DNA of 64,000 bases from the sequence record ON000910.1; one strand, 5' to 3'. The position numbers and the translations under genes are program-made. Every line of letters begins with the position of its first letter. The stretch's first letter is position 1. Below, piece after piece: positions 1,582-54,621 of the stretch. The notes under the pieces are model-generated. The model did no database searches. It was not told the DNA's origin and was given only the letters and a program-made list of their open reading frames with translations.

Positions 1582-1654
1582 GCCCAAAAATTGGGCATCA
1601 TCTTAGTAGTATTAGTAGTTTTAGTGAAGTTAGAGGTATTAGTAATATTAGAGA
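1582..1654 (+). repeat. Hairpin plus 6x9-nt TTAG array, copy 1 (copy 2 at 54549-54621, - strand)
   Basis: GCCCA-AAAAT-TGGGC, then TCTTAGTAG TATTAGTAG TTTTAGTGA AGTTAGAGG TATTAGTAA TATTAGAGA; 51/55 identity with the reverse complement of 54549-54603. Confidence 0.85.
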
Positions 1655-1739
1655 ATAGGCACCTTGTCGCATTGTTTAGAAACCACCAGATCTGTCGTAT
1701 AATCGTGAGACGAAACACACTATTAATAGGTAACTCATT

Positions 1740-2384
1740 ATGATTATAGGAATCAATGGACAAAAGCGTTCAGGGAAAGATACCCTTGCTGCTGCCATTA
1801 AAAAATCTCATAGTGATAGCACTTACATTTACAAATTTGCCGACCCGATTAAAGAAGGGTTGTTCATTGGGTTAAAAGAATATGGCTATGATTATGAAGA
1901 CATAGACGGTCAAACAGATTGTGACCGCGAAGTTCCAGTATTTACGTTAGACGAAGCAATTGAACTTGTATTAAAGTGCTGTGACTACGCAAACGTAGAT
2001 GCTGATTATGATTACGTATACTTTACTCTACTTCCACACACTGGTCTTTTTAGTATTCGAGATCTCTTACAAATGACAGGTACTGATGTTGCACGTTCTC
2101 TTAACGATCAGCATTGGATCAATTATGCACGTGATAAATACAATCAGTTAGTGTTTAACAACCCCGACTTGCTCTTTATAATTACTGATGTTCGTTTTGA
2201 AAACGAAATGAATTTAGTATATGAGCTTGGTGGCACGATGTTACAAGTTAACCGAGAAGGTTCTCTGGCATCTAATCACATTAGCGATACCGAATTGGGT
2301 TTTATTGAAGACGCTATTCAAATAGACAATAACGGTTCTCTTGAAGAACTGTATGAACAAATTGATAATTTAAATTTAAGGTGA
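1740..2384 (+). CDS. 1: Deoxynucleoside monophosphate kinase gp1
   Basis: IIGINGQKRSGKDT P-loop, FADPIK, R.LLQ..GTD, ITDVRFENE motifs; synteny. Confidence 0.92.
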   Translation: MIIGINGQKRSGKDTLAAAIKKSHSDSTYIYKFADPIKEGLFIGLKEYGYDYEDIDGQTDCDREVPVFTLDEAIELVLKCCDYANVDADYDYVYFTLLPHTGLFSIRDLLQMTGTDVARSLNDQHWINYARDKYNQLVFNNPDLLFIITDVRFENEMNLVYELGGTMLQVNREGSLASNHISDTELGFIEDAIQIDNNGSLEELYEQIDNLNLR

Positions 2385-2388
2385 AAAC

Positions 2389-2655
2389 ATGTCACAACAA
2401 ACTGCTGAACAAGTAATCGAACAGAAAGACGCACAAATCAAAGATCTTAAAGTGCGTACCTTTGACCTACAAGAGACTCTTCAAGAAGAGCGCAATTCTT
2501 TTGGTCAGTTCGTGGGTGTACTAGCTCAACTACTCGATTTCGATCAGACGCAAGCAAGTTCTCTACAGAACTACGTTGACGAAATCGCAATTCTAACCGG
2601 TAAAGCTGAACGTCCTGCTGAAGGCGACGGCGAACAAGAAAAAGACGCTGAATAA
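2389..2655 (+). CDS. 57A: Tail fibre assembly chaperone gp57A
   Basis: Small acidic coiled-coil protein between gene 1 and 57B, as in T4. Confidence 0.7.
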   Translation: MSQQTAEQVIEQKDAQIKDLKVRTFDLQETLQEERNSFGQFVGVLAQLLDFDQTQASSLQNYVDEIAILTGKAERPAEGDGEQEKDAE

Positions 2656-3110
2656 TGAAACTATCTAAGTTCCTTGAAAGTCAGGGAACTTACGTTGGTA
2701 TCAGATTAGACGAGGCGAGTAAGCAAGAGTTAGTTCGATTGCAGAAAACGCTTCGTCTAAAAAATCCGTTAGAACCAGATAAATTTCACGTGACTGTGCT
2801 TTATAGTCGTAAGCAAATTGATGTACCTGTTGTCGATACCACTTTCGTTGCTACTGTTGAACATATCGACTGTTGGAAAACGCAAGACGGCAAATATGCA
2901 GTTGTTGCTAAGATGGTATGTCCAGAACTTGTAGAACGTCACGATGATCTTATCTCTATCGGTGGTACTCACGACTACCCTGACTATACCCCTCACGTTA
3001 CGTTGTCTTATGACGACGCGATCACACCTATGTCCGTCAACGCTGAAGTTCGGCTTGTTGATGAATATCTTGAACCACTTGATTTAAATTGGGTTGATAG
3101 TAATGACTGA
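2655..3110 (+). CDS. acb1: 2H phosphoesterase gp57B / anti-CBASS nuclease Acb1
   Basis: Two HxT motifs (FHVTVLYSR, PHVTLSY), W.TQDG, G.THDY.DYTPH and EY.EPL.L.W as in T4 57B. Confidence 0.88.
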   Translation: MKLSKFLESQGTYVGIRLDEASKQELVRLQKTLRLKNPLEPDKFHVTVLYSRKQIDVPVVDTTFVATVEHIDCWKTQDGKYAVVAKMVCPELVERHDDLISIGGTHDYPDYTPHVTLSYDDAITPMSVNAEVRLVDEYLEPLDLNWVDSND

Positions 3111-3357
3111 TTTATCTACTGAAGCAGTATTAAAGAAGTACAATGAAGCTCCCGAAACTCTAACTACTGAAGAGAACGTTGTATTATTGACGTATATCAT
3201 CGGTATGCAGACCGATCAGATTGCTTTACTTAAAGAGAACAACAAACTTTACGATAAAGCTATCACTGAGCTTCAGCAAGCTGTATCTCAGCTTCAAATC
3301 AAGCACGCTGCGCTTGAACGAGGTGAGACAGAAAGCGGTATCATTCTTTCAGTATAA
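3103..3357 (+). CDS. Hypothetical coiled-coil protein
   Basis: ORF overlapping the 57B stop. Confidence 0.65.
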   Translation: MTDLSTEAVLKKYNEAPETLTTEENVVLLTYIIGMQTDQIALLKENNKLYDKAITELQQAVSQLQIKHAALERGETESGIILSV

Positions 3358-3365
3358 AAACTCTC

Positions 3366-3402
3366 AAAAAGTTGTTGACTTATTCTGAAAAGCATGTAGA
3401 AT
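3366..3402 (+). promoter_or_regulatory. Early (sigma70-like) promoter
   Basis: A-tract, TTGACT (3375), TG-TAGAAT (3397). Confidence 0.7.
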
Positions 3403-3458
3403 GTATTTCATCGAGTCGAGAGACAGAACACAAACTTTCAACTCGATGAAATATTTGA

Positions 3459-3495
3459 AAAAAGTTGTTGACTTACACTGAAATGATGTTAAGAT
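3459..3495 (+). promoter_or_regulatory. Early promoter driving the ncRNA/tRNA cluster
   Basis: AAAAAAGTTGTTGACT (same upstream block as 3366) ... TAAGAT; start site expected near 3502. Confidence 0.65.
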
Positions 3496-3503
3496 TAACA
3501 CAG

Positions 3504-3612
3504 TTGATTAAGCGAGCTAAGTTCATCGTTCTCGCCTCTTATTGAAGATGAACAATATTGATTAAGCAGACTAAACTCATCGTTTCTGCCTCTTCTCTGA
3601 AGATGAGTAATA
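3504..3612 (+). ncRNA. Two tandem 54/55-nt H-type pseudoknot repeats
   Basis: Unit 1: S1 GCGAG/CTCGC, S2 GTTCATC/GATGAAC. Unit 2: S1 GCAGA/TCTGC, S2 ACTCATC/GATGAGT. Compensatory changes with conserved linkers. Confidence 0.75.
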
Positions 3613-3760
3613 TTTTAAATGTGCGTTAGCCGCAATGAATACATGGAGCCAGTATACGTTCTGGCGTGCAGGGATACTCTTAGCGGACGAATTCTCAATC
3701 AAAAAACTAGCTGAGTTAAAATTCGCTCAGTCGGCGTGCAAGTAGCGCACATTTAAAATA
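3613..3760 (+). ncRNA. ~145-nt structured RNA with long terminal stem and a variant GCAA motif
   Basis: TATTTTAAATGTGCG / CGCACATTTAAAATA terminal stem; internal hairpins GCCAG/CTGGC and CTGAG/CTCAG; GTGCGT-TA-GCCGCAA ... GCGCAC. Confidence 0.6.
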
Positions 3761-3776
3761 TCGAGAGTACATTGGT

Positions 3777-3899
3777 CGAGTGTTGGTGTAGTGGCAGCAC
3801 ACGTAGCATACTGTAATCAGGCATGATTATATTCAGCAACCAATTTACGCATATCATAGGGAGATCGTGGGAACGGTTCGATTCCGTTACACTCGACCA
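3777..3899 (+). ncRNA. tRNA chimera 1: Pro-like scaffold (C1-G72, loop ATAGGGA) with 49-nt insert in the anticodon stem
   Basis: Acceptor CGAGTGT/ACACTCG-ACCA, D arm, T arm AACGG-TTCGATT-CCGTT; insert 3804-3852 contains GTAATC-AG..GATTAT-AT-TCAGCAA. Confidence 0.8.
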
Positions 3900-3932
3900 A
3901 TGTACTCTCACTTATCAAGCGAGGTGAACAAT

Positions 3933-4082
3933 TTGATTGTATATCTTCTCGCACTAGTATTCATCGTCCTCTTTGCCTTGGACATTGAAGAAGAAAAGGT
4001 GCGCATTCATACTTTTGCGCTAATCATATGCGAACGGGTCATTCATCCCGTAAATAAAGCGCACGATTTCAGGTTGTGTTGA
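3933..4082 (+). CDS. Small putative membrane peptide (TTG start)
   Basis: GAGGTG SD 6 nt upstream; hydrophobic N-terminus IVYLLALVFIVLFAL. Confidence 0.4.
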   Translation: MIVYLLALVFIVLFALDIEEEKVRIHTFALIICERVIHPVNKAHDFRLC

Positions 4083-4156
4083 TTAGCTAAGGCAAAATAA
4101 ACTAGAGAATTTTTGGTGCTTGTGATTAACCACAAGCACTCTCAAGAACATATTGA

Positions 4157-4281
4157 GCAGGGTTGGTGTAGTGGCTAGCACACGTAGCATAAACGCAAGC
4201 TGTTAAGTTTGTATTCTGCAATCAATTTAGCATATCATTTCCAAGATCGTGACGCAGGTTCGAATCCTGCACCCTGCTCAA
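4157..4281 (+). ncRNA. tRNA chimera 2: Gly-like scaffold (G1-C72, U73, TTCCAA loop, 3' CAA) with 49-nt insert
   Basis: GCAGGGT/ACCCTGC, T arm GCAGG-TTCGAAT-CCTGC; insert 4185-4233 contains GCAAGC-TG-TTA-A-GTTTGT-AT-TCTGCAA. Confidence 0.8.
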
Positions 4282-4289
4282 TATGTTTT

Positions 4290-4396
4290 TACTACTTTGC
4301 CAACGAGAAAAATAATTTTCGCGGGGTGTTGGTTAAAAGGTTCGAATCCTTGGTTAGGTAGCGTTTCGACGCCCTGACAAGCGAAACAAAGTAGTA
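4290..4396 (+). ncRNA. Multibranch RNA with a T-loop hairpin
   Basis: TACTACTTTG/CAAAGTAGTA closing stem; AAGG-TTCGAAT-CCTT; CCAAC/GTTGG and GTTAGG/CCTGAC stems. Confidence 0.55.
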
Positions 4397-4403
4397 ATAT
4401 AAT

Positions 4404-4521
4404 GGTGAAGTTAGTTCAGTAGGTTAGAACGCCGGCCAAAAAAAACGAAGTCTGATAAGATTTCATTCTGCATTCACATGCACGCCGGAGGTCGCAGGTT
4501 CGAGTCCTGCACTTCACCTTC
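4404..4521 (+). ncRNA. tRNA chimera 3: Asp-like scaffold with insert in the anticodon loop, no encoded CCA
   Basis: GTTC-AGTAGGTTA-GAAC D arm, CCGGC/GCCGG stem, T arm GCAGG-TTCGAGT-CCTGC; insert contains GAAGTC-TG-ATA-A-GATTTC-AT-TCTGCAT. Confidence 0.78.
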
Positions 4522-4528
4522 AAATTCT

Positions 4529-4653
4529 GGAGAGTTAGCTCAGTCTGGTAGAGCAAAAGAATGTTAAAGAATACTGACAAGCATTCATGCTGCAAACCTT
4601 AATAACTAGGTAAATCTTTTTGTCACGTGGTTCAAATCCCGTACTCTCCACCA
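4529..4653 (+). ncRNA. tRNA chimera 4: scaffold with AAAGA/TCTTT anticodon stem enclosing a 54-nt expanded loop
   Basis: GGAGAGT/ACTCTCC-ACCA, GCTC/GAGC D arm, TTCAAAT T loop; insert contains GAATAC-TG-ACA-A-GCATTC-AT-GCTGCAA. Confidence 0.78.
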
Positions 4654-4667
4654 ATTTTCGAGGGTTT

Positions 4668-5036
4668 ATGAATAAGTTTAATGACATTAATGACGAACTT
4701 GATTGTATATTGCATCGTTGTGAGATTGTAAAGCGCAATCTTCGAAAATATTGTACATTTGCTGTTGAAATGCAGTATAGACTTATGATAAACTTCATTG
4801 GCATGGGTTGCTATCAACAAGTTCTGCCGATATTAGACAATCTAAATTATCACCCTGATACAAGTCAGTTTGATAATATTGAGATTATGCAAACTATAAA
4901 AGAATTGATGAAATGTGCAGATAAGCTCGATGAGCTACATCAACAAGACGCTTTTCATCAAATTAAATCGACTGCTCGTATTACAGAAGAAGCAAACATC
5001 TTCGCTGCGAAAGTTGGTCGATTTCTGGAGAAATGA
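4668..5036 (+). CDS. Hypothetical protein
   Basis: GAGG SD before ATG 4668; the longer track start lies inside a tRNA-like RNA. Confidence 0.65.
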   Translation: MNKFNDINDELDCILHRCEIVKRNLRKYCTFAVEMQYRLMINFIGMGCYQQVLPILDNLNYHPDTSQFDNIEIMQTIKELMKCADKLDELHQQDAFHQIKSTARITEEANIFAAKVGRFLEK

Positions 5037-5037
5037 T

Positions 5038-5115
5038 GGCCCTATAGCTCAACACGGTTAGAGCAACCGACTCATAATCGGTAGGTTACAGGTTCGAGTC
5101 CTGTTGGGGTCACCA
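5038..5115 (+). tRNA. tRNA-CAT (elongator Met or Ile2)
   Basis: Full cloverleaf, loop CTCATAA, ACCA end. Confidence 0.9.
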
Positions 5116-5194
5116 AAAATAAATTGAAAAAGTTGTTGACAGACGTTTCATCAACGTGTAGTATACACATTATCAACTACACGAGGAAAACATT

Positions 5195-5425
5195 ATGTCA
5201 CATAAATTGCTAGTTATCACATCAATGCACGGTTGCTACGTCGATTACGATTTCAGAACTGAAATGTTTGACAGATACATGTGTGATGTTGTGATTCCGA
5301 ACGACTCTGTTGTTTTGTACTCGGGTACAGTTTCAATAGATGAAATTCAAGCAGTTGCGAACGAATGTTACGCTGACATCAAGATTGAAGAAGTCAGTGA
5401 TGATGTTTTTGACAGCTATCTTTAA
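5195..5425 (+). CDS. Hypothetical early protein
   Basis: Upstream TTGACA...TAGTAT promoter and GAGG SD. Confidence 0.7.
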   Translation: MSHKLLVITSMHGCYVDYDFRTEMFDRYMCDVVIPNDSVVLYSGTVSIDEIQAVANECYADIKIEEVSDDVFDSYL

Positions 5426-5429
5426 AAAT

Positions 5430-5669
5430 GCCGCTAACTGGCGTACAATACACAGTGTATTCCCAACATTAGTGCAGACGTAGGCTCGCAACCTACGTTG
5501 GTACCGAATCACTGGGACCGAGTAGAAAGTGCATGTGAGATGTCGAAGTCTTGTATGTAGAAATAACGCTCGGCTGCTCTGAAATGCTGATTAGCTCTTA
5601 CTTCGAAACTCTAATTGGGTGGAAGAGGTGTTGTGTTTGACGTGTGTTCGATTCACACGAGCGGCGCCA
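5430..5669 (+). ncRNA. 240-nt tRNA-like RNA with tmRNA-type architecture
   Basis: GCCGCT/AGCGGC-GCCA acceptor, CGTGTG-TTCGATT-CACACG T arm, AACTGG D-like loop, ACAATAC/GTGTTGT helix enclosing ~175 nt. Confidence 0.65.
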
Positions 5670-5682
5670 AGAGGAAATTATA

Positions 5683-6207
5683 ATGAAACCATTGAAGTTC
5701 GTTGAAGCGTTCTCTAAAGAAGAACGTGCTGCTATGACGATTGAAGAACGTAGCAGACTTCGTAAAATATATAACGAACGCTATCAAGAGTATGTTGATA
5801 AGTACATCAATGTATTCACTCGAAAAGACTTTCGAAGAGAGCGTTGCTGGGTTATTCTTGCACGATGTAAAAAGACTGGTGAAATCATCGGTCGAATTGA
5901 AAATAGTTTTAGTATGGGATGGTCTAAAGAACGTGTTCGTGTTATTCGACCGTATCTAAACGGTAATTTCACGGGCGATGATCGCTTCTCTAAAGCTGAG
6001 TACAACAAAGCGTGTGCTGAGTACATAACTCATCATGAGAAACAAGTAAAGTCTCTCAGAGAAGCTTACAAAGACACTCACGACGTTTTCTTATCTCGTG
6101 TGGGTAGTAAGAACTGTCCTGTTTCTATTGATTGGGATACGTATTACAATAAAAAAGACAAACGAAACTTTGAATATCGAAATTTGAAGTTCAAAACGAA
6201 ATCATAA
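5683..6207 (+). CDS. Hypothetical basic protein
   Basis: GAGG SD, ATG 5683; the track start lies within the T arm of the ncRNA. Confidence 0.7.
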   Translation: MKPLKFVEAFSKEERAAMTIEERSRLRKIYNERYQEYVDKYINVFTRKDFRRERCWVILARCKKTGEIIGRIENSFSMGWSKERVRVIRPYLNGNFTGDDRFSKAEYNKACAEYITHHEKQVKSLREAYKDTHDVFLSRVGSKNCPVSIDWDTYYNKKDKRNFEYRNLKFKTKS

Positions 6208-6238
6208 ATACTTTCTTTTAGAGTTTAGAGGAAGAAGT

Positions 6239-6535
6239 ATGAAAACGTTTGGTGAATTCCTAATTGAATTTGGTGGCGGCGGATTTCAATCTGGCGCTGC
6301 TGATGACAGTAGATTTTTAGAAGAACTTGTTCGCAGGTTGCAGAAGAAGCAAGTTCAAATTAGTAAGAAAACTGATTCTGTGAATTGGGGTCATGGTAAA
6401 ATCACGGTTAGAGATGGGAAAGTTCGTTATATTACGAAATATGATGGCCCGCGTGATTTCAAAGAGTTTAGTAGTACACGTGAATTCATGGATGCGTTCA
6501 TGAAAGGTGACTACACTCAATTGCAAGACAAATAA
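6239..6535 (+). CDS. Putative internal head protein
   Basis: N-terminus MKTFGEFLIE resembles the T4 capsid-targeting sequence; late promoter CATAAATA at 6203. Confidence 0.6.
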   Translation: MKTFGEFLIEFGGGGFQSGAADDSRFLEELVRRLQKKQVQISKKTDSVNWGHGKITVRDGKVRYITKYDGPRDFKEFSSTREFMDAFMKGDYTQLQDK

Positions 6536-6540
6536 TTTAT

Positions 6541-6656
6541 AGTCGGGTAGCTCAGTGGTAGAGCACGAAGAATGATACTGACAAGTATCGCTCCAGCACT
6601 CCTTCAATTGCCTGTTAAGCACGTGGTCGCTGGTTCGAATCCAGCCCCGACTACCA
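6541..6656 (+). ncRNA. tRNA chimera 5: Asn(GTT) scaffold with 41-nt insert in the anticodon stem
   Basis: Removing 6568-6608 gives CGTGC-CTGTTAA-GCACG and a 75-nt cloverleaf with ACCA; insert contains TGATAC-TG-ACA-A-GTATCG-CT-CCAGCAC. Confidence 0.82.
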
Positions 6657-6682
6657 TTTTTGATAAACTAGTGAGGTATAAC

Positions 6683-6919
6683 ATGAGCGGAACATTTAAT
6701 ATCAACAAAACGTTACTGACTCCGAAACAATTGCGCAATCTAACAGATGAGCGTCTAAATGAATATCGCAAGTCGTTTCGTAAGCCTCTTGGTTTTTTGA
6801 AGCATCTGAACGATACAAACGAATTGACTTCAGATCAACACAAGAAATTCGTTGAGCTTAATAAGCACTATAACGACGAAATCCTTGTTGAAATGAACAA
6901 GCGAAAACACTTAGGTTAA
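6683..6919 (+). CDS. Hypothetical protein
   Basis: GAGG SD before ATG 6683. Confidence 0.65.
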   Translation: MSGTFNINKTLLTPKQLRNLTDERLNEYRKSFRKPLGFLKHLNDTNELTSDQHKKFVELNKHYNDEILVEMNKRKHLG

Positions 6920-7187
6920 TAAAATCGCAGAAAGTTGAAATTTTTTTCAATTTTCTGCGAAAATATCGCAAATCGTCAGATTTAGTGTTATAAGTACTAT
7001 AAAGAAACAAAACAAATTTTAATTTTTATTTCAAGAGAGCATTCAATGACGCATTCGTTTACACATTCATCTGAGACATTACGCAGCGATTTTCTGCGCT
7101 CAGAATTCGTGTATCTAGCGAATCCGATTGCGAACCAGAAGTGGGATACCCTCTTGTAGTCCGATAGTATAACATAGAAGTATACTT

Positions 7188-7212
7188 GAGGACGCAAATA
7201 GCGTCCTTTTTT
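7188..7212 (+). terminator. Rho-independent terminator
   Basis: GGACGC-AAATA-GCGTCC followed by T7. Confidence 0.8.
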
Positions 7213-7290
7213 TATGGGCGCAATAAAAGTCAAAAATTTTGTTTAACGTACTTTGATTACAGAGTATGATAAACAAAGTTAAAGAACAAA

Positions 7291-7364
7291 CGGGACGTGG
7301 CGTAAAGGTAGCGTTCATGCTTTGGGAGCATGTGGTAAGAGTTCGAGTCTCTTCGTCCCGACCA
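7291..7364 (+). tRNA. tRNA-Pro(TGG)
   Basis: Cloverleaf, loop TTTGGGA, ACCA. Confidence 0.9.
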
Positions 7365-7373
7365 ATTTAAAAT

Positions 7374-7450
7374 CCGTGACTAGCTCAATCTGGTAGAGTA
7401 CTCCGTTTGGGGCGGAGAAGTTAAGCGTTCGAATCGCTTGTCACGGACCA
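7374..7450 (+). tRNA. tRNA-Pro(TGG)
   Basis: Cloverleaf, loop TTTGGGG, ACCA. Confidence 0.9.
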
Positions 7451-7458
7451 GTTTTAAT

Positions 7459-7534
7459 GCCCGATTAGCTCAATTGGAAGAGCAGCGTCCTACGAAGGCG
7501 AAGGTTACAAGTTCGAATCTTGTATTGGGTGCCA
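7459..7534 (+). tRNA. tRNA-Arg(ACG)
   Basis: Cloverleaf, loop CTACGAA, GCCA. Confidence 0.9.
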
Positions 7535-7740
7535 GTTAGTGTTGTTTGATTGAAGCTCGTTTTCGCACATTCCCGAAACTGCTTCTACGATTTGATACGC
7601 TTAGGACCGTATCTCGTTAAGTACTGTCGAGATGATAGAATTTAGCGAACTTTTTCATAAATTAGTGTTTATGATGTCTTGAGCGAGTGTTAATATTAAC
7701 ACATAGAAAATGAAAACGTTAAGTTCTTCAAAATAAATTC

Positions 7741-7868
7741 AAAAAGATGTTTACAATGACGAAAACATCATGTACAATAGAGAAAAGCGAAATATCATTC
7801 AAAGCTGAATGAAAAGTTTTTCAAAAAAAGATGTTTACAACGATATAAACATCATGTACAATAGAGAA
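7741..7868 (+). promoter_or_regulatory. Two tandem near-identical T4-type early promoters
   Basis: AAAAAGATGTTTACAA-N-AAACATCATGTACAATAGAGAA at ~7741 and ~7826 (GTTTAC -35, TACAAT -10). Confidence 0.8.
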
Positions 7869-7872
7869 GAAC

Positions 7873-8091
7873 ATGAATGACATAATTAAAGATGTGTCAA
7901 AGTTGACACTGAAAGAAAACGAACGTGTAGTGTTTAGAGTTGATGTCGGTGATTTACCAGCATCGAAAGCTAATCAGTATATACAAAATTTAGTCGATTT
8001 ATTGAAAGAAGCGGGAATTACTAACTCAATTGTTATTCCGTCATCAATAGAAATTTCCGTAATCGATGAAAACGAATTAATGCGCAAGTAG
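7873..8091 (+). CDS. Small protein resembling a segment of T4-type portal (VDVGDLPASKANQY)
   Basis: ORF behind tandem early promoters; similarity to recalled portal motif FYIDVGNLP..KA.QY. Confidence 0.55.
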   Translation: MNDIIKDVSKLTLKENERVVFRVDVGDLPASKANQYIQNLVDLLKEAGITNSIVIPSSIEISVIDENELMRK

Positions 8092-8159
8092 CCCAATCTG
8101 GCAGAGGCACTGGTCTTAGAAACCAGAAGTTAAGAGTTCGAATCTCTTCTTGCGTACCA
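8082..8159 (+). tRNA. tRNA-Leu(TAG), short variable loop
   Basis: Loop CTTAGAA, 5-nt variable region, ACCA. Confidence 0.85.
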
Positions 8160-8160
8160 T

Positions 8161-8235
8161 GCACCCTTAGCTTATCAGGAAAAGCGGCGGATTGAAGTCC
8201 CGCAGTGCTCGGTTCGATTCCGAGGGGGTGCACCA
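8161..8235 (+). tRNA. tRNA-Phe(GAA)
   Basis: Cloverleaf, loop TTGAAGT, one anticodon-stem mismatch, ACCA. Confidence 0.8.
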
Positions 8236-8323
8236 TATTATAGCTTGTTTGTAAGAGTTAAATCAAGCAAGGGATTTTAGTTTTGAGTTATTTAGCAAAC
8301 GCTCTTAACGTGAAAATCAAATT

Positions 8324-8398
8324 GGGTCGTTAGTATAACGGTAGTACATCTGGCTTTTAACCAGAAGGGTGAGAGTTCGAATCTCTTGCGACCCACCA
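8324..8398 (+). tRNA. tRNA-Lys(TTT)
   Basis: Loop CTTTTAA, ACCA. Confidence 0.9.
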
Positions 8399-8409
8399 GT
8401 TTTTATAAT

Positions 8410-8486
8410 GCGTCGGTAGCTCATCATGGAAGAGCAGGGAGCTTTTAACTCTCAGGTGTCTGGTTCGAGTCCAGAGCGGCGTACCA
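8410..8486 (+). tRNA. tRNA-Lys(TTT)
   Basis: Loop CTTTTAA, ACCA; G7-G66 mismatch. Confidence 0.85.
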
Positions 8487-8549
8487 AATTAGATACATTG
8501 TGTATCGCTTTGCAAGTTAGATAGCTTGCAAATCAATATACAATTTAAT

Positions 8550-8624: not shown

Positions 8625-8630
8625 TATTCT

Positions 8631-10787: not shown

Positions 10788-10789
10788 AA

Positions 10790-18301: not shown

Positions 18302-18394
18302 AAAAAAAGTGTTTACACGCATTAAAATTCGCGTATAATCACTTCATCAAAGACATTTTACAGCAATTAATTATGAGGAAATGAACAATGTCAG
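18302..18394 (+). promoter_or_regulatory. Early promoter plus GCAA-motif leader enclosing SD and AUG of the Ro60-like gene
   Basis: GTTTAC (18311)-17 bp-TATAAT (18334); A-GACATT-TT-ACAGCAA-TTAATT-ATGAGGAAATGAAC-AATGTC-AG, with ATG 18388 inside the 3' strand. Confidence 0.8.
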
Positions 18395-19824
18395 TATTTA
18401 TGAACGCAATGCAAACAAACGATTCACGCACAGCAAACGGTGCAGTTACTCACAGCACTTCAGGTAACGAGTGTCTAAACTTGTTCTTCGGTATTGCTGC
18501 TATGCGTGGCAACGATCAGTCTAAAACACTGTTCGGTCGTGCGTTTGCAGAAAACCCAGAACTAGCGACACGCATTCTTTTGTGGTCTCGTGATGTTCGC
18601 GGTGGTGCGGGTGAACGTGGTACTTTCCGTACTCTATTCACTAAACTTTGTAATGAACAGCCTGACGTAGCTCGTGCTGTAATGTCGAAAATTCCAGAAC
18701 TAGGTCGTTACGATGACTTAATTTCTGCTTTCGGTACACGTCTTGAACAAGATGCGATCACAATGTGGTCGAACGCAATTGTCAATGACAAGAATGGTCT
18801 TGCTGCGAAGTGGTTCCCACGTGAAAACAGCAAAAACGGTCATGTGTTCAAGCGCACAATCAAGTCTCTTGGCGTGACTGCGAAGCAGTGGCGTAAGATT
18901 CTGTCGCTTCTGTCTGACACTGTTGAGCAGAAGATGTGTGCGCAAAAATGGGATGCAATCGACTTCGGTAAGTTGCCTTCTGTAGCGTCTGCTCGTTATC
19001 AACAAGCATTCGGTCGTAACGCTTCAGCTCGTTACACAAGCTACATCGAGTCACTTCAAAAAGGTGAAGCGAAGATCAACGCTGGCGCATTGTTCCCATA
19101 CGATGTCGTTAAGAGCGTTAGTCACGGTAATGCGTCTGTAGCGAACGAGCAATGGAAAGCTCTGCCAAACTACATGGAAGGTTCTGATGAGCGCATCATC
19201 CCTGTTGTTGACGTGTCTGGCTCTATGAGCACGCCAATCAACGCAGGTACTGATCATTCAGGTGTGACTTGTAAGCAAGTTGCAATGTCTCTGGGTGTAT
19301 ATGTTGCTGAACGCAACGAAGGCATCTTCAAAGATCAATTCATTTCGTTCTCAAGCGACCCGCACTTCCACCAGTTGCGCGGTAGCTCATTGAAAGAGCG
19401 TCTTGATAACATGAATCGTTCAGGCGAAGACATGAGTACGAACATCGGTAAGTGCTTTGATGTTCTGCTAGAGCGTGCGAAGCGTGCAAATCTTTCACAA
19501 GAAGATATGCCAACCAAGTTGCTTATCATGAGTGACATGGAATTCGATCAAGCAAACACTGGTGGTGGTTGGTACGGTCGCGGTGAACCTGCGAACTTCG
19601 ATGCAATCAAAGCCAAGTACGCACGTGCTGGTTATGAAATGCCACAACTGGTCTTCTGGAACATTCGTGGTCGTCTTGGCAACGTTCCGGTTAAAGCTGG
19701 TGAAGCGGGTACTGCACTGGTATCTGGTTGTAGCCCATCTATCTTGACTTCACTGTTGGGTGGTGAGCTTGAGCCAATCAAGATCATGATGAAAACTGTA
19801 GGCGTCGAACGCTACAGCTTTTAA
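18388..19824 (+). CDS. DUF2828 family TROVE/Ro60-like protein with C-terminal vWA (MIDAS) domain
   Basis: T.NGA..HSTSG, RDVRGG.GER..FR, AAKW.PRE, KINAGALFPYD, PVVDVSGSM, SDMEFD, P.LVFWN motifs. Confidence 0.85.
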   Translation: MSVFMNAMQTNDSRTANGAVTHSTSGNECLNLFFGIAAMRGNDQSKTLFGRAFAENPELATRILLWSRDVRGGAGERGTFRTLFTKLCNEQPDVARAVMSKIPELGRYDDLISAFGTRLEQDAITMWSNAIVNDKNGLAAKWFPRENSKNGHVFKRTIKSLGVTAKQWRKILSLLSDTVEQKMCAQKWDAIDFGKLPSVASARYQQAFGRNASARYTSYIESLQKGEAKINAGALFPYDVVKSVSHGNASVANEQWKALPNYMEGSDERIIPVVDVSGSMSTPINAGTDHSGVTCKQVAMSLGVYVAERNEGIFKDQFISFSSDPHFHQLRGSSLKERLDNMNRSGEDMSTNIGKCFDVLLERAKRANLSQEDMPTKLLIMSDMEFDQANTGGGWYGRGEPANFDAIKAKYARAGYEMPQLVFWNIRGRLGNVPVKAGEAGTALVSGCSPSILTSLLGGELEPIKIMMKTVGVERYSF

Positions 19825-48321: not shown

Positions 48322-48332
48322 GATGTTCTCTC

Positions 48333-48593
48333 TTATTTGTCAAATTTGATGTAGAAGTATTGTGTGTTATTGTTCCCTGTTGGTACGCAAGTCAAGTACG
48401 GTTGCATGCCTTCGGGGCACTGAGCAAAAAATTCAGGATTAAGACGTTGAATAACGTACCAGAATTCACTGCGTTTTTCTTCCCACTCTGCTAATGCTTT
48501 CTTTCTGAATTTCATTGGCTTTTGGTGAAGCACTACATATGCGCGGCGATGTAGCCAATGATTTTTAATGTGAAGAGTTAATTCATCTTTCAT
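48333..48593 (-). CDS. Hypothetical protein
   Basis: GAGA SD; early promoter upstream. Confidence 0.6.
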   Translation of the reverse strand: MKDELTLHIKNHWLHRRAYVVLHQKPMKFRKKALAEWEEKRSEFWYVIQRLNPEFFAQCPEGMQPYLTCVPTGNNNTQYFYIKFDK

Positions 48594-48657
48594 GATATTG
48601 TTCTCTCGTTAGTTGTTGAGTGACATATTACAGCCACTCAACATTGTTGTCAACTAT

Positions 48658-49887
48658 TTAGTTGAAATTAATTACTTGACCGTCGTCTACATCACGTAGC
48701 ACATCGTATTCTTCGATGAATTGAGCCATTTTACAGTTCTTATCACCGACTGTGAAACTGCTTTGTTCATTCATATATTCAACGGCAGCAAGATAATCTT
48801 GATATTCTTGGTCATCTTCGTCATACCATTCGCTGAACTTCTCGTGCAGGTCTTCGCGGCGTAGAGTCAGGCGAGTTGTACGCTCGACTTTGAGTTGAAC
48901 TGATTCTTCAAAATACCAATCTGGTTGTAGATCTTCGATGATGTCTGCCATTTTACGAAGACGTTCAGCGTCTGCACACATGTCGTGACATTGACCAGAA
49001 GTCATAGCAGGCATAAATTCAAGGTTATTCACCAAGAAGAAGCGAGACGTCCATTTACCACCGATATATGCTTCAGCAATCTTTTGACCGAAATCGTTTT
49101 CTTTCATGTCAACAATCGGGTGAGTTTCAGTCAACCATTCCGAGCGTTCGAACTGCGTATCAAATTTAACCATGTCAACTTGCAGTTCGATTAAACTATC
49201 AATGATTTCTTTCTTCTCTTCTTCTGTTTTCGTATCGTCTTTTTCAAGTTCAATACGCGCACGTTCGATTTGAAGTCTACCACGATCTGAAATCATTTCA
49301 AGATCAGATGTAGATTTTGAATATTTCGCTACAAATTCGTCAACTTCTTCTGTAAACGTGTATGTCTTCGCGTCTTCACCCCATCCCGTAGTATACGTAC
49401 CATCGAGAATCATCTGCTGATAAATCTCTTCGTGAATTGCCATTTTCGCAATCAGACTAACGCCATGACACGTTTTCACACGCAACGCACCGCTATGTTC
49501 CATGTCTTGAAGCTGATTCATATCTTCGATTTCATCAATTTCCATGTAATCGTGATATTCGTTGTAGTCGTCAAGCGACTTCCCTTCTGGAACGCGATTC
49601 GGCATATAAATGTTGTTAATCGCCTTGAGCGTCAACGATTCCATATCAGCGTCTTCGAATTCGTAATTGTTGTAATCAGCATACTTAGCTAGAAGCGGGT
49701 AACCAATGACTTTAAACGTATCCCACGGGTAACACTTACTTCCCATTAGAACATTGCTGTAGAGCGATTTCGAGCGCAAGTTGTAATGTTGATCAAACGT
49801 GTCCATGACTAAGAAGAACACACGCGCTTTCTGACCTTCTAGAATAGGTGTACGTGAGATTGCGCAAGTTGTGTTGAATGAACCCAT
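48658..49887 (-). CDS. Conserved phage hypothetical protein (MGSFNTTCAISRTPI...)
   Basis: GGAG SD before ATG 49887. Confidence 0.7.
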   Translation of the reverse strand: MGSFNTTCAISRTPILEGQKARVFFLVMDTFDQHYNLRSKSLYSNVLMGSKCYPWDTFKVIGYPLLAKYADYNNYEFEDADMESLTLKAINNIYMPNRVPEGKSLDDYNEYHDYMEIDEIEDMNQLQDMEHSGALRVKTCHGVSLIAKMAIHEEIYQQMILDGTYTTGWGEDAKTYTFTEEVDEFVAKYSKSTSDLEMISDRGRLQIERARIELEKDDTKTEEEKKEIIDSLIELQVDMVKFDTQFERSEWLTETHPIVDMKENDFGQKIAEAYIGGKWTSRFFLVNNLEFMPAMTSGQCHDMCADAERLRKMADIIEDLQPDWYFEESVQLKVERTTRLTLRREDLHEKFSEWYDEDDQEYQDYLAAVEYMNEQSSFTVGDKNCKMAQFIEEYDVLRDVDDGQVINFN

Positions 49888-49939
49888 TATTTTGTCTCCA
49901 TTTGAGCGATTTGAAGTTGGTGTAAGTATTCTAATTGAA

Positions 49940-50266
49940 TTAAGCGAAGTGTGCAAGCACCTTTTTACCAAATTCGTTAGATTCTTCAAGAGAAGCAGCA
50001 CCTGCACTCATTGTTAAGAATTGATCTGTCATTGTTTGCATAAGAATAATGCGGTCGAAATCAGCAACTGTCGCTTCAGCGATAATAGCTGGCTTACCAG
50101 TCACGATAGTTGAAATTAGATTGAATCGACGAGCGACATCTGAACCTTCCATAGCATAAGAACCGTTGCGAAACTTATACTGACCTTGGCTAGTTTCACG
50201 CTCGAAGTTGAACCCTTCAACAACTTTAGTTTTTTGAGCTTTAGTCATGTTAGTGGTTAGTTGCAT
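49940..50266 (-). CDS. Hypothetical early protein
   Basis: GAGAG SD; early promoter upstream. Confidence 0.65.
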   Translation of the reverse strand: MQLTTNMTKAQKTKVVEGFNFERETSQGQYKFRNGSYAMEGSDVARRFNLISTIVTGKPAIIAEATVADFDRIILMQTMTDQFLTMSAGAASLEESNEFGKKVLAHFA

Positions 50267-50373
50267 AATATTCTCTCTTTGTTTTCGTATCTCGTTTCGA
50301 TGTAGATATAATACAAAAAAAGGGTTGCCGAAGCAACCCTAAATTTACGATTTATAGTGATCTATGTCACGTT

Positions 50374-51867
50374 TTACGCTGTTTTAATCTTCTTGGCGAT
50401 TTTCCATTCACCTTCATTGATAAAATCAGCTTGCACGTCAGACAGTTTACGAGCTTCTTCAAGTGAGAAGTCAGCAACTGTTACACCGTTTTCGAAGATT
50501 GTCTGCATCACGCTCTGAGCATGTACGCGATTGTCGTAATCTTCAGAAGAGAACGTCACGTAACCACGCGCTGCTGGGTTTGGATTTTCTGCATCAACTG
50601 CAATTAGATCCAAGAAACCTGCTTTCGATGCTTTTGTTGGGTCAGTCTTCGGCATCTTGAACACGCTAACGTATTCGCCGTTGATGATTGCCGCTGACAT
50701 TTTCATTGCAAATCGTTGCGTATCGCGGTCAAGTTGCTGAAGCAAACCACCACCCATACCAAATGCAATGTTTTCTGCCGACCAGCCTTTACTTTCCATG
50801 TAAGACAAGATTCGACGAATTTCTTCGATGTTCACGCCGTCGCCTTGAATGATACGGAAACTTGGGTGTAGAACTTTGTAACCCTTGCTGTTGACTGTAT
50901 AGCCAACGTTCTTACCAAGAATCTCAAGACCTTTCATTACGACATCTACAGGTACACCAGAGTCAGGACGAGCAACAAAAGTACCACCTTTGCTGATGAT
51001 TAACTCTTTGAAACGACCAGTCGAGATACGATTCATTGCTGCTTCGTAGTCGTAGCTGTCCATTACACAAGCGTATAGAGCCGCGCCCCATTGCTCGATA
51101 GAGTTCAGGAATGCTTGGTCTTCACCAACTTCTTTGTAGATTGTAGTTGTTGAGTGTTCACGAGCAGGGATTGAGAATCCCGCAATGAAGTCTTCAACAT
51201 CTTCAGCGTAAAGCTCTTCAACTGCAACAAGTGCTTCTACAGTGTCAGTTCCCAAGAAGTTTTTCAAGTGTGCAGAGCCGCCGATAGCTGCTGATTCGCC
51301 ACTTGATACACCACGCGAACCGAAATCGTGAAGCTTGAACGGCTCTTGCTCTGCAATACGTTCATCATCAACCGTTTTCTTCATGAACTCACGGATGATT
51401 TTCTTCACTTCGAATGAGATTGTTGCTACAGTTGTCGGGTACCAAATCGCACGTAAGATAAACGTTTCAAGATAGCCAGGTAGCCAACCGAAACGTGGAT
51501 CCGTGTTCTCAATCGTCAAGATAGGGTGTTTAATTGGTACTACAGTACCTTCTTTTACCGCACGAATCTTAATTGGCAGATTGCCTTTTAGTTCGTTAAC
51601 GATGATTTCCCAACCCTTGTCATTGAAGACTTCAGAACCGAAGTGCTTTTTGAACAGACGTTTCGCACGCTTGACATCATTCATCGAAACACCTTTTTCG
51701 AGAATACGACACATGTATGCCATACCATCGATCATAATTTTGTCGAACTTGCCGCCCCGGCTTTCAACGTAATATTGACTGTACTCTAAACCGCGAGGGA
51801 ATTGAGACCAGTGTGAGACTTTGTAGCTGTCAGTTGCGATTGCGATATTTTGATTAAGATTAAGCAT
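50374..51867 (-). CDS. nadV: Nicotinamide phosphoribosyltransferase
   Basis: TDSYKVSH, HDFGSRG, PAREHS, DSYD, RPDSG, QGDG, FGMGGGLLQ. Confidence 0.93.
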   Translation of the reverse strand: MLNLNQNIAIATDSYKVSHWSQFPRGLEYSQYYVESRGGKFDKIMIDGMAYMCRILEKGVSMNDVKRAKRLFKKHFGSEVFNDKGWEIIVNELKGNLPIKIRAVKEGTVVPIKHPILTIENTDPRFGWLPGYLETFILRAIWYPTTVATISFEVKKIIREFMKKTVDDERIAEQEPFKLHDFGSRGVSSGESAAIGGSAHLKNFLGTDTVEALVAVEELYAEDVEDFIAGFSIPAREHSTTTIYKEVGEDQAFLNSIEQWGAALYACVMDSYDYEAAMNRISTGRFKELIISKGGTFVARPDSGVPVDVVMKGLEILGKNVGYTVNSKGYKVLHPSFRIIQGDGVNIEEIRRILSYMESKGWSAENIAFGMGGGLLQQLDRDTQRFAMKMSAAIINGEYVSVFKMPKTDPTKASKAGFLDLIAVDAENPNPAARGYVTFSSEDYDNRVHAQSVMQTIFENGVTVADFSLEEARKLSDVQADFINEGEWKIAKKIKTA

Positions 51868-51927
51868 TGTATGGCTCCCATTTTATGCTGTTAAAAGTTT
51901 TCTCGATTATTCGAGATGTGATTGTCA

Positions 51928-52431
51928 TTAAAAACGAGCTTTGAATGACATAGTAACGACTGGAACCCAGATATCAGAACCCATCAACAACCCAAGCTCT
52001 GCACCTAAGTTATCAGTAGCCCAATAAGTAACTGATGGCTGAATCGCAGGTAGAATACCGAGATCATAAACTTCAGTATAACCAGTCGCTAGACCAAGAA
52101 ATAAATCATAGTCAATTTCTTTACTTGGTGTGTATGTGAAGTGATAACCTGCAACAAAACTACGCTCATAGAAGCTGTTTTCTAAAGTCATAACTTCCCA
52201 ATTTTTATATCTAACACCAATTGCATTGTTTGTTTCATTGTACTCTTTAAAAACAGACGTTTTACATTTATCTGCTAAATCAGGACAATATCCGTCACCT
52301 GAAAGATGATAAGACCATCCGCCTAATCGAACCTGAACATCGTCAAGGAACGTAGTCTGTTCGTTAGTAGATACATTTGCGCTTGCAACGCTAGATAAAA
52401 GCAATAGTGATAGTGCAGTAAGTTTTTTCAT
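51928..52431 (-). CDS. Outer-membrane beta-barrel, PagP-like family
   Basis: Signal peptide; GGWSYH, YNETN..IG, NSFY..S, G.ATGY; C-terminal F (SFKARF). Confidence 0.65.
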   Translation of the reverse strand: MKKLTALSLLLLSSVASANVSTNEQTTFLDDVQVRLGGWSYHLSGDGYCPDLADKCKTSVFKEYNETNNAIGVRYKNWEVMTLENSFYERSFVAGYHFTYTPSKEIDYDLFLGLATGYTEVYDLGILPAIQPSVTYWATDNLGAELGLLMGSDIWVPVVTMSFKARF

Positions 52432-52495
52432 AATGTCTTCCTCTTATTGAATGAATACATTATATTATTCTTTTTCTCACATTGCAAGCTTTTTT

Positions 52496-53029
52496 TTAAT
52501 AATATTCGATGTTAATTTTAGCTGAAGACCCCACCGCAGTCGATAAGAAACTCTTCCATTGCGATTCATTACCAGATGTCAACTCGTAAAAACGCTTTGA
52601 AGGCGAGCGATGGCTGAATATAAACACAGTACCACTTTCAGTTGTAACTCGCAGTGTTGATTGCGTCAAATCAGAAGACAATGCAATGAACGATTCAGTT
52701 GATATTTGGTCTTCGCTGTATGCTATGTCAGTTACACTTCTACCACCAATAGTAGTAGGACTCAACGAACCTGCGTTTTCGAAGTTAGTACTATTTTTCG
52801 CATAACCCCAATCAGAAGAACGAGGTTCACCAAAACGATACAACAACCCTCGAACTATAGTATGCGAGAATGCAGATTTACCTCTAAGATCTCCCAATGA
52901 TATAGACCCACTTGGTCTCTCTGCTAGATCACGAACATCTGCATCACCTAGCGATATAGACCCGCTAGGTCTGTCCAACTCGATTCGAACATCATTAAGT
53001 GATATTGGACCAGTTGATGGTAATCCCAT
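52496..53029 (-). CDS. Late virion protein with tail-tip/adhesin-type N-terminus
   Basis: MGLPSTGPISL.D...PSGSISLGD repeats...RGKS; TATAAATA at 53057-53064 (-). Confidence 0.6.
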   Translation of the reverse strand: MGLPSTGPISLNDVRIELDRPSGSISLGDADVRDLAERPSGSISLGDLRGKSAFSHTIVRGLLYRFGEPRSSDWGYAKNSTNFENAGSLSPTTIGGRSVTDIAYSEDQISTESFIALSSDLTQSTLRVTTESGTVFIFSHRSPSKRFYELTSGNESQWKSFLSTAVGSSAKINIEYY

Positions 53030-53069
53030 TATGTTATTCCTTTCATGTTAAAATCGTATTTATACATGA

Positions 53070-53840
53070 TTAACCGTTTTCACGAATGTATTTTACAAGC
53101 TTGGCGTAGTCTTGTGGTTTAAACATTCTAGGGAATTGGTGTGACAACACTTCAGCTTCTTTGTACTGTTCTGCCGTTACAATCTGTGATTTTGCAATTC
53201 TCTGAGGATGCTTGTTACTAGACAACGCATAACAGTAATCATCATCGAACGGATCATCACCTATAATATAATACTTTTCGTCCATGTAATAAACATGTTC
53301 TACGTCAGAAATTTGCTGACTTGTTTCAATGGCTGATTCTAGTTCAGCTTCGACAAGTGCTTCTTCAAGCTCAAGATCGGTAATGCCATGATGAGTGTTG
53401 TTAATAGGTTCAGTTCGACCTTCTTCAAACCCCTCAGACGGTGAAAATACATCAATGGCTTGTAACTCGCACAATGCTTTATCTACGTCTGTTGCGTCAA
53501 TGTACTGAGCGTTTAAAGACTGTAAATCAGGTCGCCATGACTTACACGAATCAAGTTCACCTAGATAGTGTGATTGACATCGACCAACTTCACCACTTTC
53601 AGTTTTATATTCGACTGGTAGATTGCTAATTGACGGTTGATTGAATGCATAGTCACGCCAGTGAAATTCACGAATAACCCATGACGGTAGTACTGAGTTC
53701 TTCAAGATATTTTCGTTCATAACTTCAGGACATTGACGCCATTCACGAACTGAACTTTCATCATTCGCTGAATTTGCCACTCGGTCGAATGGGTGCATTT
53801 TGATCTTTAGATCTTCAATTGCGATATTCGTTCTTAACAT
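53070..53840 (-). CDS. Hypothetical protein
   Basis: 256-aa ORF. Confidence 0.65.
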   Translation of the reverse strand: MLRTNIAIEDLKIKMHPFDRVANSANDESSVREWRQCPEVMNENILKNSVLPSWVIREFHWRDYAFNQPSISNLPVEYKTESGEVGRCQSHYLGELDSCKSWRPDLQSLNAQYIDATDVDKALCELQAIDVFSPSEGFEEGRTEPINNTHHGITDLELEEALVEAELESAIETSQQISDVEHVYYMDEKYYIIGDDPFDDDYCYALSSNKHPQRIAKSQIVTAEQYKEAEVLSHQFPRMFKPQDYAKLVKYIRENG

Positions 53841-53847
53841 GTTTTTC

Positions 53848-54549
53848 TCACTTATTCAATTCAACTTCAAGTTTATGCATTTTGCATTCGATTATCAACT
53901 TACGCGCTTCAGACCCGTCAGCTTGTGTTAATGGTTTACCTGCTTGTGTTAGCTCAAGTAACTTTGTTTTAGCTCGATTGCAGTCGCGTGCAGATTCAAT
54001 GAGATAGTCATACTCATGCGGGTCTAACAGCTCGATTGTCGCGTCTTGAACATCATCCATATTGTTGATATTACCAGACAATGCGTTTTGTTCACGCTGA
54101 TTTAACTCAGCTTGCATTTCAAGTTTTTCAACGCGCTGTGCTTTCTCTTCTAGAGATTCAGGAGCATCGTAATTACATTGCTCACTCAAACTAATACCAT
54201 ACTGCGTTCGCCACTGGTTACTCATCGTGCGTTCGTATGTACTGCGAATGTCGTCTTCGGCTTCGACAAGTGATGCAATCACATCACAGAAAGGGATTTC
54301 ATCGTCTGAACGTCGCACTGCATTAGATCCATATTTGTTACGAGTGGCAAGAGCAGTCCATAATGGGTTATACAGATAGTTACTAGCGTCAGCATCTGCC
54401 AACCAGTAGTTGATCATTTCACGCTCTTTTTTATTCACAACTGCATTTACAGTTGTGAATTTTTTACCAGTCTTGGTTTCAAGTTGTGGTCTTTCACCAC
54501 AACCTGCCAGTACTGCGACTGTGACAGCCACGAGAATTGATTTCTTCAC
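53848..54549 (-). CDS. Lipoprotein, paralog of 47602-48321 (GTG start)
   Basis: Lipobox LAGC; shared cysteine motifs. Confidence 0.75.
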   Translation of the reverse strand: MKKSILVAVTVAVLAGCGERPQLETKTGKKFTTVNAVVNKKEREMINYWLADADASNYLYNPLWTALATRNKYGSNAVRRSDDEIPFCDVIASLVEAEDDIRSTYERTMSNQWRTQYGISLSEQCNYDAPESLEEKAQRVEKLEMQAELNQREQNALSGNINNMDDVQDATIELLDPHEYDYLIESARDCNRAKTKLLELTQAGKPLTQADGSEARKLIIECKMHKLEVELNK

Positions 54550-54621
54550 TCTAATACTCCTAATATCTCTAACTTCACTAAAACCACTAATACTACTAAG
54601 ATGAGACGGAATTTTTCCGCC
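54549..54621 (-). repeat. Hairpin plus 6x9-nt TTAG array, copy 2
   Basis: - strand GGCGGA-AAAAT-TCCGTC, then CATCTTAGTAGTATTAGTGGTTTTAGTGAAGTTAGAGATATTAGGAGTATTAGAG. Confidence 0.85.

Follow-up and report, generated by a model that had tools for sequence, protein, structure and literature searches.

Why should a short hairpin followed by six TTAG repeats, set exactly 9 nucleotides (nt) apart, stand twice and almost unchanged in 64,000 nt of phage DNA, and what would read it there? The DNA in question (hereafter the window) comprises positions 62001-126000 of ON000910.1, the 249.5-kb genome of Vibrio phage XZ1, a KVP40-like T4-type phage of the genus Schizotequatrovirus, with which both flanks of the described region agree at 100% identity. 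We find that this hairpin-TTAG element is real, strongly conserved and apparently undescribed so far, and conclude that its most probable role is to dock a multi-subunit protein, either on single-stranded DNA, where replication would start, or on RNA. Origins without a common sequence are a textbook feature of T4-type phages, none of which is known to have sequence-specified, motif-bearing origins. If the element does act in replication, an evenly spaced, motif-defined element in six copies in the KVP40 branch would provide a handle on where and how 250-kb genomes begin to replicate; if it acts as RNA instead, it would be a multi-site switch of RNA and protein, new in kind, at the borders of operons. 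Both readings predict a protein that recognises TTAG at 9-nt intervals on one of the strands, and the element is short, sharply defined and present in approximately 50 sequenced phages of interest for aquaculture phage therapy.

Six copies at fixed sites in two genera

The two window copies were described in a first-pass annotation, made from the letters of the window alone, as a dispersed element in two copies 53 kb apart. Much of that description is reproduced here. Positions 1599-1653 on the plus strand and the reverse complement of 54549-54603 are identical at 51 of 55 positions on recomputation; TTAG fills all six registers of both arrays (1603-1656, plus; 54546-54599, minus), with the strict 9-nt period that had been claimed, and the strand called nearly C-free has no C at all in either array. 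The chance expectation for such arrays in the window is approximately 3e-9. Both copies lie, as described, between genes and run in the direction of those genes, in opposite genome orientations, and in the second copy the AGGAG Shine-Dalgarno (SD) sequence (54557-54561) and GTG start (54547-54549) of a lipoprotein open reading frame (ORF; 53848-54549) do lie inside the array. Other parts of the description needed amendment. The hairpins exist where they were placed (GCCCA/AAAAT/TGGGC at 1582-1596; GCGGA/AAAAT/TCCGT at 54606-54620, minus), but the proposed 5-bp stem with an AAAAT loop is better read as a 6-bp stem with an AAA loop, extendable to 9 bp; and the two copies, though both real, are just two of six in the complete genome. 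The similarity of the copies continues upstream to a GAGCGAAGCG box, approximately 13-15 nt ahead of the hairpin.

Whole genomes of XZ1, KVP40 and nt-1, the last belonging to another genus (Mylasvirus), were compared, with copies located by an nhmmer profile and by blastn. Each of the three contains exactly six complete copies at the same six intergenic sites, named c1 to c6 in each genome: between gene 35 and uvsY (c1); between gene 3 and gene 1 (c2, the first window copy); between a SprT-like gene and nrdH (c3); one ORF upstream of the dam methyltransferase gene, approximately 2.5 kb before rIIA (c4); between KVP40.0251 and the lipoprotein gene (c5, the second window copy); and between gene 12 and wac (c6). 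The genes at c2 are named after their identical orthologues in ValKK3 and KVP40, as annotated there. The profile search returned 18 copies at 67-79 bits and everything else at or below 6 bits, with no partial or decayed copies in the three genomes. By blastn, the element occurs at 4-6 places per genome in approximately 50 KVP40-like phage records, with no matches outside KVP40-like phages, and scans of IMG/VR and metagenomes added a few marine contigs and nothing more.

Across the three genomes the element is at least as conserved as its flanking genes and more strongly conserved than adjacent non-coding DNA, and it is kept at c4 and c5 although one flank is non-homologous in nt-1. The first-pass annotation had proposed a search for further copies in the full genome and its relatives, and had staked its interpretation on conservation there; the copies amount to six per genome at orthologous sites in two genera, and the conservation is clearly present in both. 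A miniature inverted-repeat transposable element or a repeat like the repetitive extragenic palindromes was rejected on the grounds of six full copies at fixed sites, no partial copies and no terminal repeats seen. The element goes unmentioned in the KVP40-group literature that was searched, an earlier mention in the 2003 KVP40 genome paper being possible.

Anatomy and transcriptional setting

The element spans approximately 100 nt and consists of a GCGAAGC box, a spacer, a hairpin of 6-9 bp, the linker TCATC and six units of the form T-T-A-G-W-R-R-W-W; an alignment of 27 copies supplied the hairpin, linker and unit consensus. TTAG is 99% conserved, unit position 6 is a purine in 97% of units, and C makes up 1.3% of the array as against 23% for G. 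The stem has one of two cores, CGGAA-AAA-TTCCG or CCCAA-AAA-TTGGG, and the covariation noted in the first-pass annotation is upheld: two stem pairs show double compensatory change (CGG/CCG to CCC/GGG), the outer pair switches between G-U and G-C, with the G-U (or G-T) wobble on the sense strand only, and 86% of cells in the stem alignment pair, compared to 35-55% with the partner columns shifted. The compensatory variant probably has a single origin, from which gene conversion spread it, as is also suggested by variants common to copies within one genome; it accordingly provides modest evidence for a folded single strand and no proof. When the 27 copies were folded with RNAalifold, the 6-bp hairpin was the sole prediction and the array was left unpaired, and as DNA also the array is predicted to be unstructured. 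The box is found in 4 or 5 of the six copies per genome, and GCGAAGC and its variants GCGCAGC and GCGTCAGC all retain the form of the G(N)nA-loop DNA mini-hairpin, the stability of which was reportedly described by Hirao et al. The GCGAAGC sequence occurs 12 times on both strands of the window, where composition would predict approximately 5, and two of the 12 are in the element.

Individual copies vary. The sole copy with a broken hairpin, GGCTCA...TTCCGC, is on a metagenome contig (L151:4588-4613) and looks like a hybrid of both stem variants. In c2 of phage K566 (L144:441-494) the neighbouring repeats 3 and 4 both read TTCGAGATA in place of TTAG, producing two TCGA palindromes, probably through unit-to-unit conversion. 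The gene 3/gene 1 spacer of Vibrio phage 1.081.O (L141:213-521) contains a tandem duplication from box to array with the copies 164 nt apart, the first of which has a seventh TTAG unit.

A coding micro-ORF or read-through peptide (the LVVLVV frame) was rejected, since it is the nucleotides that are conserved and TTA is never swapped for a synonymous Leu codon; at the other codons K, I, E and F replace one another, and orthologues do not agree on the frame in which the element follows the upstream stop. A long RNA hairpin of the array itself, held by UUAG-UUAG wobble pairing, was likewise rejected, with energies of -6 to -15 kcal/mol, a varying register and no RNAalifold consensus. The palindrome GCCCAAAAATTGGGC would fit the Fis consensus; a Fis site was set aside because the promoter distance is unphased and stem compensation would be left unexplained.

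Promoters and terminators were identified by sequence scans. In each of the three genomes, every one of the six copies shares the orientation of the genes on either side. Copies c1, c2, c3 and c6 start 5-35 nt past a canonical intrinsic terminator (that of gene 3 at c2 being kept also in KVP40, nt-1 and D483), and five of the six have an early-type promoter 0-30 nt further on, with GTTTAR, a 17-nt spacer and a TATAAT-like sequence at c1, c2, c3 and c6, and TTGACA, 17 nt and TACTAT at c4. Because a terminator comes before four copies and a promoter after five, the element lies outside the main transcripts, and the promoter scan found none inside or just upstream of it. The array ends 0, 0, 8, 19 or 27 nt ahead of the -35 element, distances that are not in phase with the helix; the gene 1 promoter, 19 nt past the c2 array, is kept in relatives. 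Copies c4 and c5 come after a stop codon, with no terminator. At c5 the upstream phrog_13605 gene extends with its final codons into the box and ends in a TAG directly beside the hairpin; in XZ1, KVP40 and nt-1 alike, repeats 4-6 contain the SD and start codon of the gene that follows. The lipoprotein gene is missing from nt-1 and the array is joined directly to the phrog_13539 gene, so that a cassette indel junction falls exactly at the array; the phrog_13539 ATG is in repeat 5 (L155:1255-2094 compared to window 53070-54599). The strict T4 late-promoter octamer, TATAAATA, occurs just 13-16 times per genome on both strands of XZ1, KVP40 and nt-1, and an association with late promoters was rejected, since c6 (wac) and c3 (before gene 24) are the only copies with the octamer close downstream, at a distance of 120-330 nt.

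The gaps between the six sites measure 26-56 kb, and random placement seldom gives so large a minimum gap or so small a coefficient of variation (P = 0.003-0.008); such even spacing is expected of a genome-scale DNA function, not of an mRNA signal. By predicted duplex stability the XZ1 arrays are in the 0.01-0.74 percentile of the least stable 54-bp windows, that of c2 ranking within the lowest 0.02 percentile genome-wide, and three or four arrays are among the 15 least stable loci per genome (4 of 15 in XZ1 and in KVP40).

DNA and RNA readings of the element

We favour, with a probability of roughly 0.35, the reading that the element is a strand-specific cis site for protein assembly, acting as DNA at six dispersed origin-like sites. 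What the sequences establish is how the element is built, its conservation and number of copies, the spacing and orientation of the sites and the low stability of the duplex; that it acts as DNA, is melted and starts replication, and the kind of protein that binds it, are inferred. The element would occupy the gap between transcription units, usually with a terminator as a shield upstream and with an early promoter firing away downstream, and negative supercoils behind the early-transcribing polymerase would melt the TTAG array. The melted sense strand could fold the GC-rich hairpin, possibly also the GCGAAGC mini-hairpin, and would present six TTAG registers at 9-nt intervals to an oligomeric or cooperative single-strand-specific protein, such as an initiator, a helicase loader or a helicase; the adjoining early transcript might serve as primer, as at T4 oriF and oriA. 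Even spacing, low duplex stability, placement between terminator and promoter, and the uvsY and dam neighbourhoods give indirect support to an origin. T4 oriF is annotated at the uvsY start, and c1 is less than 100 bp from the uvsY start; T4 oriA is just downstream of dam, and c4 is one ORF upstream of dam. These two copies are oriented with the early transcript, and the other four have no T4 counterpart. T4 origins fire along the local early transcript (PMC3016281), which would explain the co-orientation of all six copies.

Comparison with known replication systems is only partly favourable. The T4 R-loop origins oriF, oriG and oriA likewise occur several times per genome, at approximately one per 35-40 kb (about five origins in 169 kb in T4, against six elements in approximately 245 kb here), and are likewise found on the 5' side of early or middle transcription units, together with an A+T-rich unwinding element. 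They consist, however, of a promoter and a downstream unwinding element without repeats or hairpin, whereas the phage element is a motif array; a T4-type R-loop layout was rejected, the unstable array being upstream of the promoter in five of six copies and c5 being promoterless, and the T4 uvsY leader has no similarity to the element. Iteron origins (lambda, plasmids, SPP1) likewise place regular direct repeats beside an easily melted region, but classical iterons are helix-phased duplex sites of 17-22 bp and the element has a 4-nt core, a 9-nt period and strand asymmetry. The first-pass annotation had suggested either an iteron-type origin, citing the T4 oriE repeats, or sites for a multimeric single-strand-binding protein. 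With 9-nt units and a 4-nt invariant core, duplex iterons are a poor fit, and the T4 oriE parallel fails on its 24-bp period and its position inside the gene 5 coding sequence; the single-strand binder agrees with the periodic TTAG, the C-poor strand, the sense-only wobble and the stem compensation. The oriE 'iterons' are six repeats of 24-bp period in gene 5 (L161:5903-6070), which we take to encode the C-terminal beta-helix repeats of its product, and the repetition may be a protein by-product. No Rep-like gene is annotated beside any copy, nor was one seen among the flanking proteins of c3-c5 that were scanned. DnaA-trios and basal unwinding at bacterial oriC likewise involve a short-period, strand-specific motif on single-stranded DNA beside a GC-rich element, and the first triplet of each unit, TAG, and the second, W-R-R, are presumably near the DnaA-trio consensus; DnaA-trios have a period of 3, where the element has 9, and T4-type phages are not, to our knowledge, known to use DnaA. 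No conserved match to DnaA boxes was seen by eye past three phage arrays, no scan of the phage elements having been run.

Several observations weigh against replication origins. Other AT-rich loci are equally unstable as the arrays. The spacing statistic is post hoc, computed with the data known, and, because the three genomes are syntenic, the spacing is one observation and not three. T4 origins have no common sequence motif and need no initiator protein (PMC3016281), and a motif-defined origin would therefore be new for the phage group; moreover, the oriF unwinding element is downstream of its promoter and the array here is upstream. Nor is there a promoter near c5, a copy that is embedded in an operon and doubles as a ribosome-binding site. 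The wobble pair and the shared direction of element and genes suit RNA at least as well, and the identical 20-nt core in a transcribed 3' untranslated region (UTR) of Flavobacteriaceae, described below, also points to RNA.

By rough likelihood bookkeeping, the DNA and RNA readings are about even, and action as DNA is placed slightly ahead because four of six copies are located where little transcription is expected. An RNA operator is a nearly equally likely alternative, in which the hairpin would nucleate and the C-poor (UUAGWRRWW)x6 tract would bind an oligomeric or spreading protein, so controlling translation (at c5), decay or read-through, in the manner of TRAP or HutP on UAG repeats, of the T4 gp32 operator, or of a six-site ring with a Rho-like footprint of approximately 55 nt. 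It would account for the co-direction of all six copies with transcription, for the sense-strand wobble and compensatory stem changes, and for a predicted hairpin beside an unpaired array with so little C; the retention of the c5 SD and start in repeats 4-6 despite a different downstream gene in nt-1, the position of c4 and c5 after a stop codon without a terminator, and the invariance of the core in at least 105 genomes of Flavobacteriaceae, where it lies in a transcribed 3' UTR, argue in the same direction. Yet four of six copies lie just past strong intrinsic terminators and ahead of the next promoter, and would therefore be carried by read-through RNA only; no promoter was found to start a transcript at the element, its even spacing and fixed count of six have no RNA rationale, one copy alone overlaps a ribosome-binding site, no Rfam family matches (Rfam 15 giving nothing near the gathering score for either window copy) and no candidate binding protein was identified.

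The nearest RNA systems share some of these features. TRAP and HutP sites are likewise multiple UAG repeats on unstructured RNA, read by a ring or cooperative protein, but their period is 5-7 nt and the element has a 6-nt spacer after UAG and a period of 9; an operator of this type was rejected on the wrong spacer, on overlap with a ribosome-binding site at c5 alone, and since no alternative terminator/antiterminator fold was found. The T4 gene 32 operator has a structured nucleation element and then approximately 55 nt of unstructured RNA up to the ribosome-binding site, as in c5. TRAP, HutP and gene 32 sites are confined to one or few regulated leaders, whereas the element occupies six dispersed sites, mostly behind terminators. 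Lambda nut/boxB resembles the element in a GC-rich stem of 5-6 bp, an A-rich loop, the ATCA... that follows and a sense-strand position between genes; it also differs, the element having an AAA/AAAAT loop, not the GNRA-like GAAAA, no boxA and a location after terminators. We know of no N-like protein in the KVP40-like phage group.

A duplex DNA operator array and a recombination repeat both fit worse than the DNA-origin or RNA readings. In the former, which we consider improbable, a small regulator such as a ribbon-helix-helix protein would bind six TTAG boxes cooperatively and activate, repress or insulate the early promoter. Five of six arrays do end 0-30 nt ahead of an early-type promoter in a fixed orientation, and a 4-bp core with a constrained WRRWW spacer is typical of short-period operator arrays; the omega repressor binds 7-bp heptads and ParG binds 4-bp boxes at an 8-bp period. 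But the distance from array to -35 is variable and unphased, c5 is promoterless, the six downstream genes form no coherent regulon, and stem compensation, wobble asymmetry and even spacing would all go unexplained. More improbable still is a shuffling repeat, selfish or resembling the PeSL cassettes of these phages, kept for cassette exchange or spread without site-specific biochemistry. At c4 and c5 the element marks the exact point where nt-1 ceases to be homologous to KVP40/XZ1, nt-1 has its array fused to the next gene in the absence of the lipoprotein gene, 1.081.O has its tandem duplication, variants common to copies within a genome hint at gene conversion, and PeSL-mediated shuffling has been described for nt-1 and KVP40 (PMC4122927). 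Against this stand six full-length copies at fixed sites across genera with none decayed, a TTAG that is 99% invariant, a position-specific spacer and conservation above that of neighbouring non-coding DNA; there are no terminal repeats, target duplications or associated transposase, and the element differs from the PeSL definition. A PeSL is a terminator stem-loop with an early promoter and SD (PMC4122927), and these cassettes likewise lie in terminator-promoter junctions of the same phages and are tied to gene-cassette indels. Identity with them was rejected, the element being an extra module of approximately 100 nt between stem-loop and promoter that is unmentioned in PMC4122927.

A shared core in Flavobacteriaceae and other features

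Bacterial genomes were scanned with the invariant core, that is TCATC and the first one and a half units. At least 120 loci were returned, of which 105 are one orthologous site in Flavobacteriaceae and the other 15 are scattered coding segments. The Flavobacteriaceae site has an invariant 22-24 nt holding the exact 20-nt core, TCATC + TTAGTAGTA + TTAGTG, between the stop of a DUF4293 membrane-protein gene, a divergent neighbour of rho, and its terminator; codons just 5' of the motif vary synonymously but the motif does not. As an oriC the locus was rejected, since it has no DnaA-box cluster. The motif has no Rfam match on its strand, and a sub-threshold Flavo-1 RNA match lies just beyond it in convergent orientation. 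We estimate at roughly 1 in 100 the probability that an ultra-conserved non-coding site of this kind would be matched by chance; a factor shared by phages and Flavobacteriaceae, if one exists, would raise the RNA reading. We think it unlikely that hairpin, TCATC and (TTAGWRRWW)n form an unrecognised code for a widespread single-strand-binding factor, possibly a six-site ring, present six times in the phages and once in Flavobacteriaceae (in the DUF4293 3' UTR, next to rho). The same code could, in the phage, define motif-bearing origins or loading sites for a clamp or helicase.

Table 1. Positions of the two window copies, their neighbouring features and the Flavobacteriaceae motif.
Feature	Position	Strand	Basis or remark
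Gene 3 (tail completion / sheath stabilizer), 5' of c2	973..1509	+	ORF list, orthologue annotation
Intrinsic terminator of gene 3, directly 5' of element	1519..1543	+	Terminator scan
GAGCGAAGCG box containing GCGAAGC, c2	1555..1564	+	Copy comparison
c2 hairpin, core GCCCAA / TTGGGC, AAA loop	1579..1599	+	GA..TC flanks may add pairs
TCATC linker joining hairpin to array, c2	1598..1602	+	Invariant in 27/27 aligned copies
c2 array, six 9-nt units TTAGWRRWW	1603..1656	+	C-free
Early-type promoter for gene 1: TTTAGA, 17-nt spacer, TATAAT	1675..1703	+	Scan, 10/12 match
Gene 1 (deoxynucleoside monophosphate kinase), 3' of c2	1740..2384	+	ORF list, orthologue annotation
Lipoprotein gene (lipobox signal peptide), start codon in c5 array	53848..54549	-	LPAM_1, phrog_8733
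c5 array, six TTAG units	54546..54599	-	C-free; repeat 5 = AGGAG, repeat 6 = GTG start
c5 hairpin, GCGGAA / TTCCGT, AAA loop	54603..54623	-	G-T(U) outer pair
phrog_13605 gene (unknown function), 5' of c5	54621..55049	-	
GAGCGAAGCG box, c5	54636..54645	-	Within end of upstream ORF
Flavobacteriaceae motif, Gaetbulibacter	L162:6440-6530		104 further loci, L163-L281

Further observations concern nt-1 DNA and the remainder of the window. The DNA of nt-1 has no more than approximately 348 7-deazaguanines per million nucleotides, or approximately 170 per genome (PMC6884629); a link between these and the element is numerically possible, has nothing in its support and was dismissed as pure speculation. 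Near the tRNA region, at 18388-19824 on the plus strand, the window encodes a 478-aa protein with DUF2828 and DUF7788 domains, the KVP40 and nt-1 counterparts of which are annotated 'RNA-binding protein'; no link between this protein and the element was found. These domains are, we believe, similar to TROVE/Ro60. A search of public sequencing runs gave no RNA run for the phage. Finally, in four public DNA runs of related phages, the low-depth contigs end at the c2 element (window 1504-1670); the loose ends at c2 run on into the flanks of c4 and c6, and the local bump in depth is a repeat artefact.

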